NCBI GenBank assembly: GCA_965637545.1
Contig: OZ281501.1
Coordinates: 3,472,001-3,536,000 of the forward strand
Source: Phallusia mammillata
Lineage: Eukaryota
DNA length: 64,000 bases
Direction: 5' to 3'
Part shown: positions 50,509 through 60,759 of the stretch, piece after piece
Layout: every line of letters starts with the position of its first letter
Position numbering within the stretch: position 1 is the first letter of the stretch
Notes under the pieces: model-generated
Databases searched by the model: none
What the model was told of the DNA's origin: nothing
Seen by the model: the letters and a program-made list of their open reading frames with translations, nothing else
Translations under genes and position numbers: made by a program

Positions 50509-51305
50509 GTTTAAATGTTCAACTAATAAACTGAATGTTATAAATTTTGTGTTAAAGGTCAAGTGGTAACCATGGAGACAAAACATCAAGGTCACTGCCG
50601 TGTGCCAGTAAGGAGAAGAGAACGCGCATTTTGAAGACACAGCCAGCTACATATTCAATTTACAGGCGATGAAAATCATTCGAATGCTGTTAATGGTTTG
50701 AAATTACCATCAAGCTTAAAGACTCGCACAGACTACCAAATGGGCAATAGAATGCCAAATGGGCCACTGTATTCATTTTCCTTTCGAGTTCAACCAATAG
50801 GAACACCAACACACACTTTTTTTGTCAACAACCGTCGGCCTTTTGCTGTATTCTGTACCTCCAGCGCCACCACAAAAGCTACTGATTTTTATTTGCAAGA
50901 AAAAAACGTAAAAAAAATCTATTAAACTGAAAATGTGCTGAACATTTTTCATCATAGAGATCAGAAAGGTCATTTCTCCTCACGAAAATCCATCACATAG
51001 AAAACATTTGCTTTGGGATCTTTGAGATAAATTCGATCAGTTTGGGCTGTTTCTGTCGGATATTACTAAACTTAAAGTACAATCAACTCATATGGTGAAA
51101 TAACGATCATGTAGAAATCACGATAAACAATGAATACGCTAATAAAAAACGACTTTTTTCCTTTTTATACACATCTTAAGTCAATTATTTGATCAAACAA
51201 AAAAAAATTAAAAACACACTAAAGTTTAACAGTATTTACAACAACATACAATCTAAACACAGTGTTTTGTGGTGTAATATATGTTTAAAAGTCAAAAACT
51301 CATTT

Positions 51306-54300
51306 TTATCGTCGAATCATTTTCCCTGCGTCGTTTTGATTCCATGTTGTTCTTGGCTTAAGTCTTGTAGTGCGGAATGGTGTTGGAGAGTAAAGGTCGT
51401 TTACATTCAGTTTTTCAACTTCTTCGATCATAAATCGGGTCTAAGATTACATATATTGGCTTTATGACTTTTAAATGCAGCCAACGAAATTTATTTTTTG
51501 TGAGCGTGCCTTTTTACCGACAGTGTTTCAAAAACCAAAAAAGAAACACATTTTAAGAACATTTATTAAACAAACCATGGCTTTCGACTTTTTTGCGTGT
51601 CGTTTTAGCAACATTTACCGCATTAAATTAAAAACACGGGTAGGCCAAATCCAGAAAAATATGATCAACGAGTGACCTTTTCTCTGTTAAATGACATCAA
51701 AATGCTGAACAAATTTTTGGTAAAAGTCAAATGTATACCTTTGTGTTTAGTGTTTTGTGTTTTTGTACGCAACTCAAAATAAAAATTTTATGTCAGAAAT
51801 CAATCGCAAAAATGTGTTGTTTTAATTATGTCAATAACCATCTGCAAAACTGTGAATTAAAATTTGTCAATGTTTCAGTTAAGATGAACATCAATCCATA
51901 ACTGGGATCAGCCGATGCGTCTATGCAGTGGGTCAATGTTTCAGCACTTAGTCATTCAATTTGCTAAAAATGTTGCAAATCAACAAAACCATGTACTTAC
52001 AAAGACATAGAACATAGAGAGGCCGTTGCTTAACGCTTGTACGTTCTGAATGTCGAAGGGTTCAATCATGTATTTAGCCTGATTGGCTTGCTCAAATGTA
52101 ATGTTCCTTGGGTCAATATCCATGATTTGTCTGCGAATACTTTCACGACCTGTGCGACCCATCAGTGCCTGAATGTCAGTCCATTCCTGAAAAAAAATAT
52201 GTAGATGATTTTTGCAACTGGAACAAACTAGTATTTGCCTAGTATAGCTAACAGAACATGTAGTTTCAGAGTTGTACGTCAGGCCGCTTTTTTTGTTGGG
52301 CTTGGGTTTGGGTTTCCGCCGGGTTAGAACCTAGGTTTAACTGTCCACCTAATATTTAACTTTGCTACATTTGCCCTGTAATTTCACCTTCTTTGTACGA
52401 TTGTACATGCGCATAGGGTGTGCATTAATTTGTTGCAAACAGCCGTATATTCCATAGGCATAGATCATATTGGTACGCCTGTCCACAGAATTAGTTATGT
52501 TGGTAAAACAAGCTTTTGTGCCTAATTCAGACTTTAAAAAGGTATAGAGATTTGGACCAGGTTTCGGACTTCTGGTTCGTTACATGTGGACTAAAAGTTA
52601 GACCCCATTATTACAACTCGTGGTTTTGGTCTGATGTCATTTTCAACACTAACAAGGGTTTAATTTCTTTTCGCTACACAAGATGCAGATACGTGCAGTT
52701 GCTTTAAGTTAGACAATCTGAAATTACTAACCTCTAAATCATAAGCCTTGTATCCAAGTATTAGGTAAACTGCCGTCATTACTTCATGTACGCCTGCTGG
52801 TGGGCTACCATAGCTTCGGATCTCAGAGACTTCACTTTGTTTCAAGTTAAGCACATTTGTGCGGGCCTGCAAACCAAAAATTTCTCCCCGTATGAATTAG
52901 TTGTTCCGTGACTATCTTCGTCTCACATGCACAATTTGCGATCACATGCACAATTATATTAATGTAACAATAAATATTAAACATTTTCAGTCTGACCGAC
53001 TTTCGGACGAAAAAAAATAATGTTACGCTACAACAATTCAAATGAGAATTAATGATTTTCATTAGAACAAAACTTTTTTGAAATGGTATTGTGAAGATCA
53101 CATTAAAAATTGCCCATATTTTTCAATTTTTTGGTGTTTGTATTAAAGTTACGTGTCAGAACATTAAAATGAGGTTTGAAATTTTAAACTTATACGCATA
53201 CTGTAAAACATTTTTTGTCCACAGTTAAGCAAGATAAAACATTTAGCAATTAATGTGCATTCAATGTAGGCAATTATATAAATTTATTGGTTTTCGGTGT
53301 ACGTATTTAAATTAAGCAAACTGTATAAATAACAACAAACAAAGGCAGCAATAACAATTATAATAAATTACGGTGCGAACAAATTACTGTCCCCACCTCT
53401 TCGACCATGTCCAATTCCGCCTTCATCCTTTTAGCTCTCTTTACCTCAACCGGGAGGTCAAACTCATAACCCCGGTCACGCACGACATCTAGTGTACGTG
53501 TTACCAGATCGTAATCGCGATTCAAAACGGACTGTTCCAAATCTGACGCAAAAACGCAAAGTAAGTGACGTCATCGATTTGTGACGTCATTGATATGCGA
53601 CGTCATCGTTCTGTGACGTCATCACACACGGGTACTTACCCCCCTTGCACCGATATACGTCCAGCATACGATCGATGGTGGCCTGATCGTAACCTTTCAG
53701 ACTCTTCAGCTCAATGACGATTTTTTCCACCGCCTCCATATTGTTTTTGTCAATTGCCAATTTCAATCTTTCCATTAGACTCTGCAAATAAGTTTACGCG
53801 TATCACAGAAAGTTTAAAGGTATCAGATAAGATGAACATGAATATTAAACCGGGATCAGCCCTTGATGAAGCGTCAGACCAGCGACCACGGTACACTCAT
53901 ATGTAAATTATAGTACGCCAGGCCTATTAAAGGCGTTGTACCTAATCTAGCCGGCCTTCCATGCATTTTCACTATAGATTACTGAATAAATGTTTACTTT
54001 TTTTCTATATTTTTTTAGCATTTCACGAATATAGTCAGCAAGTTGTGTAATACGGTTTTATACTGCGTTGACTTAAAACTGCCGAACAATCTTACTTCTA
54101 TTTTCCTCAGATCTTGAAGCATAACTTCGGCACTTTGCAATTCAACCGACAAATCGTTGGTAAAGTTTCGCTTTTTTACTTCAAAAATCGAACGTTCCAA
54201 ATAACGAATGTTACGACGTTCCTCAGAATAGCTTAAACCTACAAAATGTAAGCGGAAAAGTAATTAGGTGGGGCAGATCTATCACGTTAAACGCTGTTTG

Positions 54301-57300
54301 AAATGTACATGAACAATGACACCAGAGTTGCAAGCGGGGCTGAAACTGGAAACCTGACCAGAAAGTACAAGTCCGAGATCCGGCATGACTTACAACTATG
54401 ATATGCACAACACATCTAAAACAACATTTAAGTTTCCCAAGTAAACGTTAAAGTAAGAAATTATTTTTGTGATGATTTCAAAAATATTTTATTTGAAAAT
54501 GACTCATCACGGGACTATTACTTTAAGTGCGGAAACTTTGGATGTTTGTGTTTATTCATTGTAACTTAACGAAATTTTCGGATTTTCGCGCACATTGTGT
54601 TTTTGTAGCCGTTATGAAAAATCAGTCGAACGTCAAACCGGGCTTTCAGGCTTATTTTGAATAAACGGGCTTGATTCGGTCCTGACTTATAACTCGGCAC
54701 CATTTTTGCCGCAATTTCGCCACCTTTCGTGCATAATTTTGGCTTTGTTAAAAAATGGTTTTGGATTTGGTCTTGTACTTTTGGGTTCGGGGCCTAATTT
54801 CGGGCCTGCTTATAACTTTGCGTTACCATATCACACTGAAAAAAAGCAAAATCTTATCACCAAAAATGATTTTTGCAACCAATCCTAACCCACCGTCTTT
54901 GCATTGATGTAAACTCAACAGACGTTCTCCCCTTATAACATCACCGTCTGTATCAACAAGATTCAAGTCGTGGAATTTGTCCAGGGCCATTGCAACTCCA
55001 GTGACGTCATCTTTCGTTAGAGCGATTCGAAGTTGTTTGCGTACAAGGGTTTCATCGCTGGCTGGGTTTTCATGTCTAAAAACACATTGTTTTTACTAAA
55101 AAGGTAAATGCTTACTTATACAGTTAAACACAACTACAGTTGGGCAAAAAACGCAATGAAAAATGTACAATGAAAATATGATCAAAACACATGTGATCAC
55201 GATAATTTTGCTTTCTGCTACTGGACGATATGAGCACATTCGCGCAATAAAATTTATTGTGCAAGGCACTGATTGTATTGGTTAACTTTGTTTTTAAACC
55301 TAGCATGTTCCCTTTGGTATAACGTGACCCCCTAAAGATTAAAAAAGCCTAAAATGTATCAATTTTTCGTTTTTCTTCTTTTGCAGTTATGAGTCCGGGT
55401 TATGGGAAAATATGGCACTTTAAAGTTATTAACTTGAAATACTTTTTTGACTATTTTCTGGGGCGAAATTATATGCTAAAAATTGTTAAAACTAAGATCG
55501 AAATAAAGACGCAAGTTAAAACTAGGAGTTTTGATACCAATCATTAATTTTTTCGACGCTGTCCATCAAAATAAGAAAACATCCTAGAAATATTGATGAT
55601 ATTGCAGTCATATTCATAAGCAACAGTGAATTTAATGTCTGAATCAAGAAGGTTTAATTGCTAAAAACATATTTGAACCTCATACCCTTTGATAAGAACC
55701 TCATCCATTTCTTTCCTCTCGTCTTTCTAAAAACAAAAAGTTATTTCACAGTTACACAATACATTTGCCACACCCCCAAAAATGTATACCTTAGCCGCGC
55801 CCACCAAATTCTCGCGTCGTGTGAACCAATAGTAAGCGAGCGCGATTATGATGCCACAAACGAATATGAGACAAGCGAAAACAATGCCAGCAATCTCTCC
55901 ATCACTGAGGCCACGTGCTGGTATTACTGCTACTGTAGTATCAGTTGAGTTAGGACTTGTTGTTGTAGCTTCAGTGGTTGTCGCCTGAACAGTTGTGGTA
56001 GGAGCTTTGGAAAAAATAACATTTGGTCAATGGAAATTCTATTACAAACTAAAGTAAAAACCCCCATCAGACTAAGTTTGATAAATACCAATGGATGGCG
56101 CGAAGAGCATTTGTGAAAATTTAAAAGCAAATTGTGTGAAAATGCAGACGGTTAGGGTTGGAGTGAGGCATTAGAAAATAATAACAATAAAACCAAATTA
56201 TAAATTTAGTCCCTAATGTTAAATTTATCAGTCTCAGTGTTTATTCAAATATTTGTCCCCTTTACGCCATCTACTGGTGCTTAGCAAACTTTGTTTTTTC
56301 TTATGTAGCTTATGATCTAGGGATGTTCAACTTTTCGAAATTCCACGACTGCATCACAACTTGTGATTTCTATTATCTTACGTGTATATCCGATCTGGAC
56401 AACAAATGCTGCAGTACCAGCTGAAGTTCCTTCCACTGAAAAGTAGACGTTTGTATCAGCTTGTGTGATGTTCAGCATAAACGTTGTAGTCGCACCAGGA
56501 GCTGTTACCGTGAATCTGTACAAAAACGTTGTCATGTGAAAAACAATACTAATATTTTAAACCAACATATACATTTTAGCTTAATACTAGGCTAGTCTAT
56601 GCCTTGCCATATTGAAATGCTTAATGACCGACTGATTCGGTATGGCGTCTTCAATAGGTCTGGCGTACTATGATTTAAATAAGATACTAATGATGCTGTT
56701 AAAGCAAAATACATACACATAGCCTATGTACGTACAGCCCATACCTACATGCAGCCTCGGTTGATCCGGCCAAAATAATTGTCCGGAATAGGCGAAGAAC
56801 CGGATTAACCGATTTTGATTAGTCAATGCCTTACTATCACATTACAAATTATTTGCACTTAGGCGAAGATGCGGATTAATCGAAACCGGTTTAACCGAAG
56901 TTTACTGTGTATCAATCTTATTGACGACTGAGGTAATGCTATATTTGACCTTAAATCTACATGTGAAAGAAATTAAAGCTGTTGTTTTCACTTGGACGTA
57001 CAGAAAATCGTGCAGAGCCGAAGTTGGCGTTTCCACTGTGGTTGAAAAGTAACAATTTGCAGTCCCGGATGTTGTGAAGAAGCTGACCGAAGTGGGAATC
57101 GATAAAACGACTTCGAACGTCTGAGACTGTCCCTGAGAGAGGTTTCCTTGTATTGAGATGTTGGTGCTAACGGTTACTTGCACTGCAATAGAAGGTTTGT
57201 TTTGTGTAGATTTAAGTGGTAAACTGGATATTGAAAAATGCAAGCATATAACACAAGGTTGGTGCTTTGGAAAATCGAATTTTTATGTAACGACTCTGCT

Positions 57301-60300
57301 CAGAAGATCAACAACCGTAATTTAGTGTTAAAAACATATCCCTAACCTCATATCCTGCAAGTAGACAATATGCCTAAAAAGCTTTTGGTGAAAAAATATA
57401 ACATAATCTTTATGTTACTACATCCCTTTAACCAATCTTTTGTTGTTGTTTAAAAAAAAAAAAAACTATCAAACTTTTTGGTGATAAACCAAAAGCAGTA
57501 TCTAGACTAGACAAAAACTAAGTTTCTACATAAACTAAGCTTAGTTTGGTCAAAAGGAAAAAAAAACTTATGTCTAACTTTTGTCAAAAGCATAAAACTT
57601 ACAAAGAATATGAAAACTCGACACGACTTGTAAAGCGGCTATTGTTCAGCCTTTTTGCAACGAATTAAACCCTTACCTTCACAAATGGATTCTTTCAAGG
57701 TGGTGATTATTGCGGATAAAGCGGCGGCATTTGCCACAAGAATAGCATGAGTTGTTGAGTTGTAGGTCGCTAGATTACTTAGTTCGCTCTGATCAAATAA
57801 GAAAACGGTTTAGAAACTGAAAAATTGTTGCTACAAACGATGCCTTGTTACCTGGTTAATTTTGTTGGTGTATCCGACAGCAATGACGTCAGTTTGGGCC
57901 GCTGCAGCAAGCATAAGAGGAATTGCGGTTGAATCTTCGCTGGATTGTTGCGTAATAATAACTATTAACTGCAAACAAACATACAGGCTAACGAGATTGC
58001 ATTTTTAAGTTGCTTTGAACGCTACTTTCTATACAGAAATGATTTTATTTGTACATTCTCAATCGTATCGATTCCCGTATTACTGAAGGTAAATGTGTAA
58101 TGCGACCTCTATATAATGTGACATTTACATAAAACTTCTAGAAGTTGGTGTATTATAATAAACTGACTTGTTATTTTATGTATTTAATGAGAGGTGTTAT
58201 TGTCATAACGATAAAATCATGAAGGTTAACTAACTACTTCTCAGTGTTTTTTTGCCATTTGTGTGACCTTTTAAGCTATTGGTTCCCAACATCTTTGGAC
58301 GAATTCCTTTCTTAACAATTTAAAACATTTTCATTCCTCCCTAATGTGCTACGTAGTAGATGGTAAACAACACAAAGATCATTTAAAATTGGATATTTTT
58401 CAACTTCACGTGTCATAATCCCAAAGCTTAAGTGTCTTTTTACAAATCACATGGATAAATTAAGATAAATTCCTCCCCTCAAGATTTAATTTTCGGAGGA
58501 ATTCATCCCGGTTGGAAACCACTGTTTTAAGTAATATTATTGCTAACCTTTCCCACGCCTTGCTCAGGTCCTCGATCCGTCGAAAACATCGCAAGTGAAT
58601 GAGTGATTGCAATCCCAGTCAATACCGAGGCAGAAGCTTGTTTCGTTAAACCATCAACAACGGACGAAACAACTGTAGTGTTTCCGCCTGAAGTTAACTC
58701 CAGTACCCTCTGCAAGACAACCGGAAGTATGACGCATGTTAATGACGTAACGCATGACGTCATAGCAAACCTCTTGGATTCCGGAGAATTGAAGAATGCC
58801 AAATCGCGTTTGGTCGTTGCTGATGTCAAAAAACGAAATGACGTCACGTATTGTCGATTTTACTTGAGCGAAATCGGCGTCGCTTATAACGGATGAGCTG
58901 TCCACCATAAATACGACGTCACGTTGGCTGTACGGACATGCTACAGTATATAACATAATATTATTAATTGGTGATTGAAGGAATTGAGGGGATATAGTAA
59001 AACAAATGTAACTCACTGGTGGGTAATTCGTTGACCAAGGCAGTGAAATTTGCTAGGGTTATAGGAGGTGATTCAGAATAGAAATAAAAACCCCAAACAT
59101 CAAACTAAAAAGTGCACAACATATATAATAGTTACCTTAAAAAGGCAAAGATACCTTTAAAAGTGTAGTTTAGGTTTCAGTTTTCTATGTTAATCTTTCA
59201 AAAACAAATATAACAGTGATATTAAAACGCATACTTAGATTTTGTTTAGCTGTATGGACATGACAACTTTTCAAAACCATCTGTTCTACATTTGTCTTGA
59301 TAAACCGATCTCAGCTTGCTGTTAAAAGCTTGTAAAATTAGACACCTTTGCTGAACATGCTCGTTCAGAAAGCTACGTTGTCAATGTACAATACGAGTTA
59401 GATTTGGTAGGCAATGTCTTTTCATGCGACGTGCATAGGCCAAGTAATGAAACAACAATCCAAATATAGTTAATCAGTCAAAATTATTACCTGCTGCGAA
59501 ACACTGTCACTAATTACGGTGCTTTGAGATTCCCCGTATGCGAGAAGAAGTCTTGCAGCAAGTGCCGAATACAAAGGTATATTTAAATCTGTGTACACCA
59601 CATTGGCCCAGTTGATTGCAAATGCAGTTTGGATTTCATCATAAAAGGAAGAAACGTTGAATGTTTCGGCGTTAATTTGGTCGAAGTTGCCTTCATCAAT
59701 CTGCAGAAAACATGTACTGGCTGAGAATAGGCTTTGACAGCGGGATTGCAAAAACCTAAGGGAAGAAATTTACTTTGATTTGTACGTGCGGTTTGTAAAT
59801 ATAGACTGTAGCTCTGAAAAAAAAATAACCAGTGAATTGGTAAAACGCCAAAGTGATCTTTTTGTGTGCATCTATTATGTAGTCTATTTGGAAGGAATTA
59901 CAATGTTTTGAATTGTGAAGTTAGAAATTCATCGACCATCTTAAATTTCACCTTCCATATTCCACCATCTCCAAGCGTTTCGCCGTCTCTTGTTTCTACA
60001 TAAGCTAGACGTCGAAGCATTTCATGATCAGGTGGAAAAATGGCTAAAAGAAAAAAGCTGTTATCACGTTTTTGTTATAAACGCTATTAAGTTTAAAATC
60101 ATCAACAGAAAGTTTGCAGCCATTTTCTAGGTTTCAGCAATTGCTATTGGTAACATTTTTGAAAATTAACGTATCTTTCTTATTGTTGCTAAGTATTATT
60201 TGAACCAAAATCACTTTGCATTTATTATGGCAGAAATGTTGGGCGAAAAAAATATACGCGGCAAGTGCATGGCATATCCCAGACCAGAGTGGTTCAAGAC

Positions 60301-60759
60301 TGGGAGGTTGGCAAGCATTTGTGGCCGAAAAAGGAGAAAAGCTCCTGTATTAAAGGCTGAATTTGCTGTTTTTATCGACATGTTTTAAGGCCCAAATGTT
60401 ATTTAAAAAATCAGCGCGTTTATATGGTCAAAAAGCGCGAAAAATATATTGTTATTTTTAGGGATCAGTCACCTGTTTTCAGCAGGCAGAAATTGTTTGC
60501 GGCCCGCGGACCAGGGTTTTGACCACCCTGTAGTTTTACCTAGGAAACTTATTCTTTGCTTCCAATTCTACCTTGCAACTTATTCTTTTGTCAGATGTAT
60601 GCTTGTACAACTATCTTTAAACTTACCAGCATCTTGAATGAGTTCAACGCATCGTACAACAACGGATTTTCCAAAGGCATTCGGCTGTAAGGTTAAATCC
60701 GTTTGTGAGGCAACAGAGCTAATAAAAAACAATAGAGACAGAACAGGCCACACTACCAT
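51306..60759 (-). CDS. Type I membrane protein, ~907 aa: signal peptide, lysozyme-like domain, VWA, beta-sandwich, Thr-rich stalk, TM, helical repeats, dynein-stalk/MTBD-like domain
   Basis: 19 phase-consistent exons totalling 2724 nt: 60759-60627, 60043-59952, 59700-59491, 59104-59017, 58940-58771, 58709-58548, 57968-57852, 57788-57677, 57182-57002, 56515-56382, 56004-55790, 55726-55686, 55075-54894, 54238-54096, 53781-53640, 53542-53397, 52866-52732, 52186-52001, 51440-51306. Signal MVVWPVLSLLFFISSVAS; VWA RDVVFMVDSS..TRFGILQFS; TM IAGIVFACLIFVCGIIIALAYYWF followed by TRR. Confidence 0.75.
58277..58524. mobile_element. Degenerate hAT-type MITE, 248 bp
   Basis: TATTGGTTCCCAAC ... GTTGGAAACCACTG. 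TSD TTTTAAGC / TTTTAAGT (7 of 8 match). Confidence 0.7.

Follow-up and report, generated by a model that had tools for sequence, protein, structure and literature searches.

The window analysed here, a stretch of 64,000 nucleotides from the tunicate Phallusia mammillata (assembly GCA_965637545.1, contig OZ281501.1, positions 3,472,001 to 3,536,000), carries on its minus strand a gene of 19 exons that runs from a start ATG at 60759 to a stop codon at 51306 and encodes a protein of 907 amino acids. This protein is built from a signal peptide, an unannotated N-terminal domain (N-domain), a VWA domain, a putatively beta-rich region, a Thr-rich stalk, a transmembrane (TM) helix, four helical repeats, a dynein-type microtubule-binding domain (MTBD) and a basic tail. 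Two proteins annotated as 'uncharacterized', P0090 from Clavelina lepadiformis (LOC143468480) and P0016 from Styela clava (LOC120325398), are collinear with it over their full length and have the identical domain order. As judged from sequence profiles and predicted fold, the homology between the C-terminal module and the dynein MTBD is established, and this cassette without a motor apparently defines a broader, undescribed invertebrate family of membrane-anchored proteins.

Results and Discussion

A dynein microtubule-binding domain without a motor

The C-terminal domain had originally been described as resembling the dynein stalk head, and this likeness turned out to reflect homology, which we regard as established because profile matches and structure comparisons by Foldseek and VIA agree. 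When exon 17 was compared with the PDB using phmmer, every one of the 35 matches was a dynein heavy chain (best E = 9.7e-6). With alignment A1, which represents the MTBD module family in 24 rows, as a profile, 73 PDB chains were found; those listed, 60 in number, all belong to dynein heavy chains, including a chain of 4583 aa whose entry carries a radial-spoke name. DNAH6 gave the best profile match (E = 1.5e-10), with profile positions 9–131 covering the whole MTBD and short stalk flanks. Pfam family PF12777 matched the module weakly, with 14 of the 24 A1 members at E ≤ 1 and the window protein at 16.5 bits, short of the cut-off of 24 (E = 0.0046), and in eight full-length proteins bearing the module it was not called at E ≤ 0.01.

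For the fold we used an AlphaFold2 (AF2) model of the Clavelina tail, calculated from a 26-row alignment, which reached a predicted local distance difference test (pLDDT) score of 91.3 and a predicted template modelling (pTM) score of 0.75. Alignment A4 was built without the fragment rows of window exons 13–15 and 19, which had aligned onto the wrong repeats in alignment A3. Nearly all of the top 35 Foldseek rows for the tail model were dyneins, with a TM-score of 0.72 and a root-mean-square deviation (rmsd) of 2.0 Å to the yeast MTBD 6kjo and a TM-score of 0.65 to 6rzb_C. VIA comparison with dynein stalk/MTBD structures gave Z scores of 17.9 (5ayh), 17.8 (3err), 15.5 (8i3j), 14.1 (6l4p, rmsd 2.6 Å over 124 residues) and 12.4 (2rr7). 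Four further chains, which may or may not be dyneins, come from cryo-EM structures of complexes bound to microtubules and also fit the tail model with Z scores of 7.6–11.2, namely 9fqr_Xl from the bovine sperm doublet, 9ya2_L from the Toxoplasma intraconoidal microtubule, 9e5c_2e from the T. brucei doublet and 7jrj_I from the Chlamydomonas radial spoke; for the Toxoplasma chain no paper was found in the literature covered.

The window protein is no dynein motor, as Pfam recognizes only the VWA domain in the Styela orthologue and in the window exons, and neither AAA+ ring nor linker is present. A long stalk was not found either: AF2 places a helix of about 25 residues before the globular part and one of about 22 residues after it, and further upstream lie the four repeats instead of a two-stranded stalk. 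These repeats form a duplicated two-repeat unit, the repeat pairs being homologous to each other (hhalign 97.2%, E = 4e-11); they were found by profile–profile comparison, and a self-BLAST of the tail gave no repeats. The module is found on other proteins as well. A HMMER search with exon 18 against 1.84 billion representative sequences gave 88 matches at E ≤ 1e-3, none of them of dynein size and the longer ones carrying the match near the C-terminus.

One gene and one transcript

The window contains one real, expressed tunicate gene that gives one transcript. Contigs from four RNA-like runs (X1–X3 and X5, the latter from a second study) were aligned to window positions 51200–57199, and in runs X1–X3 single spliced contigs of 1919–2087 nt join exons 9 to 19. 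Their blocks are 51249/51262/51278–51440, 52001–52185, 52731–52865, 53396–53542, 53640–53781, 54096–54236, 54892–55075, 55686–55726, 55790–56004, 56382–56515 and 57002–57184, and each skipped segment ends CT..AC on the plus strand, which equals GT..AG on the minus strand. Seven of the ten joints, 55726/55790 included, were recovered from X5 in shorter contigs.

The decisive place is the passage from the TM exon into the cytoplasmic exons. The TM exon ends at 55790 (AAG/GTATAC) and is followed by a 63-nt intron, a 41-nt exon at 55726–55686 and the next exon from 55075, and only the path through this microexon preserves the frame. The junctions 55790 > 55726 and 55686 > 55075, which the original prediction had singled out for confirmation, are seen directly in the contigs of X1–X3. 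As TM exon, microexon and every cytoplasmic exon lie together in these contigs, the TM-containing transcript runs on to the stop codon at 51306 and does not end after the TM exon; its 3′ untranslated region extends to at least 51249 (contig ends at 51249–51278). The idea that two genes, one for a secreted or TM-bearing ectodomain protein and one for a separate cytoplasmic MTBD protein, had been falsely joined could draw on the Clavelina proteins P0107 and P0108, which end shortly after the TM helix, but is highly improbable given single contigs in three runs that reach from the TM exon as far as the stop and show canonical splice ends, a frame that needs the microexon, and annotated Clavelina and Styela proteins that are fused in the same way.

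Towards the 5′ end the contigs continue past 57184 into an exon ending in ...KESICE (exon 8), and those of X1–X3 begin in the sequence of exons 6–8, pass through TM exon and microexon and reach the stop codon. For exons 1–8 the share of 31-mer words found in RNA-like runs of two studies was 0.22–0.23; transcription of the eight modelled exons and nothing else would give about 0.24. Splice logic, collinearity with the homologues and this word share together suggest the junctions of exons 1–8. The complete 19-exon model has GT-AG introns throughout and an unbroken reading frame, and no gap falls on any of its junctions when it is aligned with P0090 of Clavelina (43% identity) and P0016 of Styela (35%), which bears out the exon number, the start and the stop that had been proposed. 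An alternative 5′ model (exon 2 to 59902, a 40-nt exon at 59813–59774 and a long exon 5 beginning at 59052) was also in frame, but it was rejected as it adds about 40 residues compared with Clavelina and Styela. All exons are compiled in Table 1.

Table 1: Exons of the Phallusia mammillata gene in window coordinates, with the encoded features and the evidence for them.
Exon	Position	Strand	Encoded feature	Evidence
1	60627..60759	-	ATG, predicted signal peptide aa 1–19, start of N-domain	hydrophobic N-terminus; GTAAGT donor; collinear with P0090 and P0016
2	59952..60043	-	N-domain motif LRRLAYVET.DG...GGIWK with putative catalytic-type Glu61	motif shared by the N-domains of tunicates and molluscs (alignment A5); junction by homology
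3	59491..59700	-	N-domain core (DLNIPLYSALAARL)	homologue alignment
4	59017..59104	-	end of N-domain and linker to VWA	detected only through comparison with Clavelina and Styela
5	58771..58940	-	VWA beta1 with degenerate MIDAS D-S-S-S-V	Pfam VWA, E = 1.2e-10; P0109 and the molluscan proteins retain DxSxS
6	58548..58709	-	VWA; preceded by 61-nt intron	homologue alignment
7	57852..57968	-	VWA, TQQ in place of TDG	homologue alignment
8	57677..57788	-	end of VWA	loose RNA-contig end at 57184 reads into exon 8
9	57002..57182	-	first half of post-VWA ectodomain region (originally called a beta-sandwich)	RNA joint 56515/57002
10	56382..56515	-	second half of post-VWA ectodomain region	RNA-contig joints
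11	55790..56004	-	Thr/Pro-rich stalk, predicted TM helix aa ~504–526, TRRE stop-transfer	hydropathy peak 3.06; RNA joints 56004/56382 and 55726/55790
12	55686..55726	-	41-nt microexon, keeps the frame	joints 55726/55790 and 55075/55686 in X1–X3, the first also in X5
13	54894..55075	-	helical repeat R1	RNA joints; AF2 helices; repeat homology
14	54096..54238	-	helical repeat R2	RNA joints; AF2 helices; repeat homology
15	53640..53781	-	helical repeat R3	RNA joints; AF2 helices; repeat homology
16	53397..53542	-	helical repeat R4 and CC1-like helix into MTBD	RNA joints; AF2 helices; repeat homology
17	52732..52866	-	dynein-type MTBD from H1 (EIRSY..PP..V..VM), Glu771, Arg773	phmmer against PDB, 35 dynein matches, best E = 9.7e-6; PF12777 E = 0.0046, below cut-off
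18	52001..52186	-	remaining dynein-type MTBD, through H6	HMMER search; profile match to whole dynein MTBD
19	51306..51440	-	CC2-like helix, basic 30-aa tail (net +5, pI 11.45), stop codon	RNA contigs; charge figures

The surrounding region is AT-rich eukaryotic DNA with open reading frames that are all short, and tblastn revealed no paralogues within the window. There are two very small introns of 61 nt (58710–58770) and 63 nt (55727–55789) and one of 97 nt (53543–53639), next to introns of 300–750 nt. At the boundary of exons 5 and 6, adjoining the 61-nt intron, the contigs of X2 and X3 break off some 390 nt upstream of 57184; intron retention may have interrupted the assembly there. Within the intron between exons 14 and 15 (53800–53999) X1 and X2 each have a second contig that fits partially (95–99% alike, loose ends at 53912–53947) and may derive from a repeat or from a piece of an unrelated transcript.

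Relatives and the wider cassette family

The gene belongs to a small tunicate family and is conserved in three other tunicates. The C-terminal part of the window protein is common to P0003 (fragment H2Z6E4 of Ciona savignyi) and P0006 (LOC104266065-like, from Phallusia mammillata itself). In Clavelina, P0106–P0108 are neighbouring paralogues, one of which has the cytoplasmic block of four repeats three times in front of the MTBD (1350 aa), while P0107 and P0108 stop soon after the TM helix and have no cassette. The architecture had been put forward as new, which has to be restricted: it is already present, unnamed, in the public Styela and Clavelina protein sets and its cassette sits on other invertebrate proteins, although no name, Pfam family or paper was found for it. 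In the literature no paper was found on a dynein-type MTBD outside dynein, on this architecture or on links to KY/hillarin, most subscription journals lying outside the coverage.

Many invertebrate proteins that await characterisation, with sponge and amphioxus marking the range, have the cassette of repeats and MTBD at their C-terminus, all of these carriers being named 'uncharacterized' or after their other domains. Branchiostoma carriers combine it with a CLCA-like N-terminal domain, VWA and a TM helix, and carriers with KY-like transglutaminase and Ig domains occur in Branchiostoma and molluscs, once together with a CARD. The carrier from the sponge Sycon has EF-hands and a coiled coil, that from the sea cucumber Apostichopus a coiled coil and no Pfam match, that from the rotifer Adineta several TM helices, and those from oyster, clam, chiton, gastropod and coral have short N-termini. 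In the ESM Atlas the tail model has molluscan clusters without annotation as its neighbours. Vertebrates, arthropods and nematodes are not represented among the named matches, no search having been aimed at their absence.

The start MGxxxS is the consensus of N-myristoyltransferase. It is found in seven soluble carriers from molluscs and amphioxus (P0008, P0038, P0044, P0063, P0079, P0083 and P0086), and their sequences suggest that these seven are probably tethered to the membrane. Several of them have a cysteine at position 3, a possible palmitoylation consensus. TM helices occur in the carriers from tunicates and the rotifer and in the CLCA-like ones from amphioxus. As the listed carriers thus have either an MGxxxS start or TM helices, the module would usually be held at a membrane.

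Two peculiar arrangements should be mentioned. The Branchiostoma proteins P0063, P0095 and P0096 are KY-like with four KY Ig-like domains, a CARD and the C-terminal MTBD cassette, linking the module to a death-fold signalling domain. P0008 from Pinctada imbricata (1437 aa) has three copies of the MTBD module, each followed by a renewed start of the KY-like region, and may represent three tandem genes merged by the annotator.

A proposed static tether and its rivals

Only two hydrophobic peaks are present in the window protein, at aa 1–19 and about 504–526, the second being followed by TRRE. Nine N-x-S/T sequons precede the TM helix and two follow it, and the 35 residues directly N-terminal to the TM helix consist to 57% of Ser, Thr and Pro. 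By its sequence the protein thus has what is expected of a type I single-pass membrane protein. The VWA assignment (PF00092) is certain at the sequence level, with 42.3 bits for window exon 5 alone (E = 1.2e-10) and 92.5 bits for Styela P0016 (4.8e-26) at a gathering cut-off of 23.8. Signal peptide, VWA, Thr-rich stalk, TM helix with its RR stop-transfer, helical repeats and dynein-stalk-like C-terminus were hence all recovered as originally proposed.

As a working explanation we favour a static tether. Outside the cell, the type I protein of 907 aa would expose the N-domain, probably of the lysozyme superfamily, the degenerate VWA, one more ectodomain region and a mucin-like stalk; on the cytoplasmic side, the four helical repeats would form a rod bearing the motor-less MTBD homologue and the short basic tail. 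The ectodomain would hold a glycan-rich extracellular matrix or a ligand, and the tail would dock the membrane onto microtubules. Since an AAA ring is missing and only CC1/CC2-like flanks of about 25 residues are present, binding could not be nucleotide-gated as it is in dynein. We hold the chances of this model to be evenly balanced, with microtubule binding, the type of ligand and the location at the cell surface being inferred.

Several findings weigh against it. Four of the six residues that form salt bridges with tubulin in yeast are changed in the window protein, and its MTBD core is acidic (net -3, pI 5.05). In the VWA domain the metal ion-dependent adhesion site (MIDAS) is degenerate and lacks residues of a functional site, the window having D-S-S-S-V and T-Q-Q instead of the D-x-S-x-S and T-D-G of the secreted relatives, and the last MIDAS serine is lost in Clavelina and Styela too. 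A lysozyme relationship of the N-domain escaped detection at the sequence level, with nothing found in Pfam at E ≤ 10 and neither a lysozyme nor any other sequence match obtained in PDB profile searches with alignments A2 and A5 (a 13-sequence profile). Finally, the carrier with a CARD would also fit a role in signalling or oligomerisation.

The contacts deserve a closer look. Six residues of the yeast dynein MTBD take part in salt bridges with tubulin, namely K3117, E3122, R3124, R3152, R3159 and R3201 (Nishida et al., PMC7042235). We mapped these positions through HMMER alignments and counted them over 22 family members of A1. Two of the three positions in H1 are kept: E3122 is Glu in 22/22 members (E771 in the window) and R3124 is Arg, Lys or His in all 22 (R773), whereas K3117 is Gln in 17/22, including Q766 of the window, where the preceding K765 matches K3116. 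In H3, R3152 is variable (Thr in the window) and R3159 is replaced by Gly in 19/22 members with Lys or Arg as the next residue in 20/22, the window having Gly followed by Arg. R3201 in H6 corresponds to Asp or Glu in 14/22 and has an Arg one position earlier in 13/22, the window showing Ala preceded by Gln. The two H3 positions are poor discriminators because DNAH6, a real dynein, differs there too, having Pro and Gly. The charge of the core varies between -5 and +7 across the family; the tail after the core is basic in the window protein (+5), and a basic tail likewise follows the module in many other carriers.

From these data we judge it about as probable as not that the tail binds microtubules as predicted. 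A dynein-derived module that has lost microtubule binding and is reused as a platform for interaction, oligomerisation or signalling at the cytoplasmic face of the membrane is a serious alternative, if one that we rate somewhat below an even chance. It would account for the contacts that are lost, for the acidic charge at the R3201 position, for the wide range of core charges and for the occurrence of the cassette beside CARD (amphioxus P0063), KY-like, EF-hand and CLCA-like modules, which is how adaptor domains typically occur. It is less compatible with the H1 Glu and Arg equivalents being kept family-wide, with the whole MTBD fold being preserved at high confidence and with basic residues standing, in many members, one position from the lost contacts. 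The same conserved pair and fold argue for the static tether, as do the basic tails and the typically membrane-tethered carriers, which would suit a link between a membrane and a polyanion.

A second alternative starts from the ectodomain. The N-domain (aa ~20–172) shares the motif FLRRLAYVET.DG...GGIW(K/Q)I with the other tunicates and with secreted molluscan proteins, and the ESM Atlas model of the Clavelina N-domain has a TM-score of 0.85 to a molluscan cluster with N-domain, VWA and CBM14. The same model shows TM-scores of about 0.5 to clusters of SLT, glucosaminidase and phage tail lysozyme and of 0.7 to small phage proteins. An AF2 model from nine sequences was poor (pLDDT 51); with this low-confidence model the best Foldseek rows were MltE and a GH23 chitinase (E 0.6–1.4), and in VIA every Z score was below 5, with lysozyme-superfamily enzymes making up at least 25 of the top 50 rows. 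These hints are consistent but weak, and we regard a lysozyme-type fold of the N-domain as fairly likely. The lysozyme-like domain of the original prediction has such hints at the level of fold in its favour and lacks a match in Pfam or PDB sequences.

The ectodomain might then be an active membrane-bound enzyme of the muramidase/chitinase type, with the tail serving only for sorting or positioning. Besides the structural neighbours, this would agree with the arrangement of a Glu, some 10–15 residues and GGIW(K/Q)(I/V), with the presence of Glu61 (in YVET) in the window, in Clavelina and in 7/7 molluscan proteins aligned, its equivalence to a catalytic Glu being inferred from the motif alone, and with the chitin-binding CBM14 domains of the secreted relatives. 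However, Styela has Asp in place of this Glu, all structural scores are weak and the N-domain has no sequence match in Pfam or PDB, and we consider the enzyme unlikely.

Extended to all carriers, the static tether would mean that an undescribed invertebrate family of membrane-anchored, motor-less MTBD proteins tethers membranes or receptors to microtubules, and that in tunicates the fusion to a lysozyme-like/VWA ectodomain links an extracellular glycan matrix or microbes to microtubules. We offer this wider view tentatively and would not yet bet on it. The dynein MTBD is usually regarded as exclusive to dynein heavy chains, and here it ends many non-motor and mostly membrane-anchored invertebrate proteins. 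If the module binds microtubules, these proteins would form a new class of membrane–microtubule linkers and provide a natural nucleotide-independent MTBD for studying tubulin recognition, and in tunicates a direct route from an extracellular glycan-binding/lysozyme-like module to the microtubule cytoskeleton is proposed. If it does not, they would clearly exemplify a motor component that has been taken over for a different task.

Comparison with known systems

With the dynein MTBD (PF12777 region; 6kjo, 6rzb, 6l4p and 2rr7) the window module has in common that the whole globular domain can be aligned, including the signature E-I-R-S..PP..V..VM, W, S and F/W, that the predicted fold agrees within an rmsd of 2.0–2.6 Å over about 124 residues and that short antiparallel CC1/CC2-like helices flank it. 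In contrast to dynein, the protein has no AAA+ ring, no linker and no long stalk (about 15 nm, to AAA4/AAA5), comprises 907 instead of more than 4000 aa and carries the module on a membrane protein. Apart from the four tubulin contacts that are changed, the module also differs by an insertion of three residues with a conserved basic G-K-T-G-K motif.

Among the closer relatives, the Clavelina protein differs by an extra disordered juxtamembrane insert, in addition to the triplicated repeat block of one paralogue, and in Phallusia P0006 the module follows directly after the TM helix without repeats. The amphioxus CLCA-like proteins P0054 and P0070 share the signal peptide, a VWA ectodomain, one TM helix, a cytoplasmic helical region and the C-terminal MTBD cassette, but they have a CLCA metalloprotease-type N-terminal domain (PF08434), and apart from VWA the ectodomains are unrelated. 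P0109 and the molluscan proteins P0129–P0135 share the N-domain (42–50% identity) followed by VWA; these secreted proteins differ in having an intact DxSxS MIDAS, chitin-binding CBM14 domains that replace the TM helix and no cytoplasmic part. By description, the window protein also resembles the anthrax toxin receptors ANTXR1 and ANTXR2, which are type I receptors with VWA, an Ig-like part of the ectodomain, one TM helix and a tail linked to the cytoskeleton. Unlike the window protein, these receptors have an intact MIDAS and no N-terminal lysozyme-like domain, and their tail leads to actin and does not act via a dynein-type MTBD.

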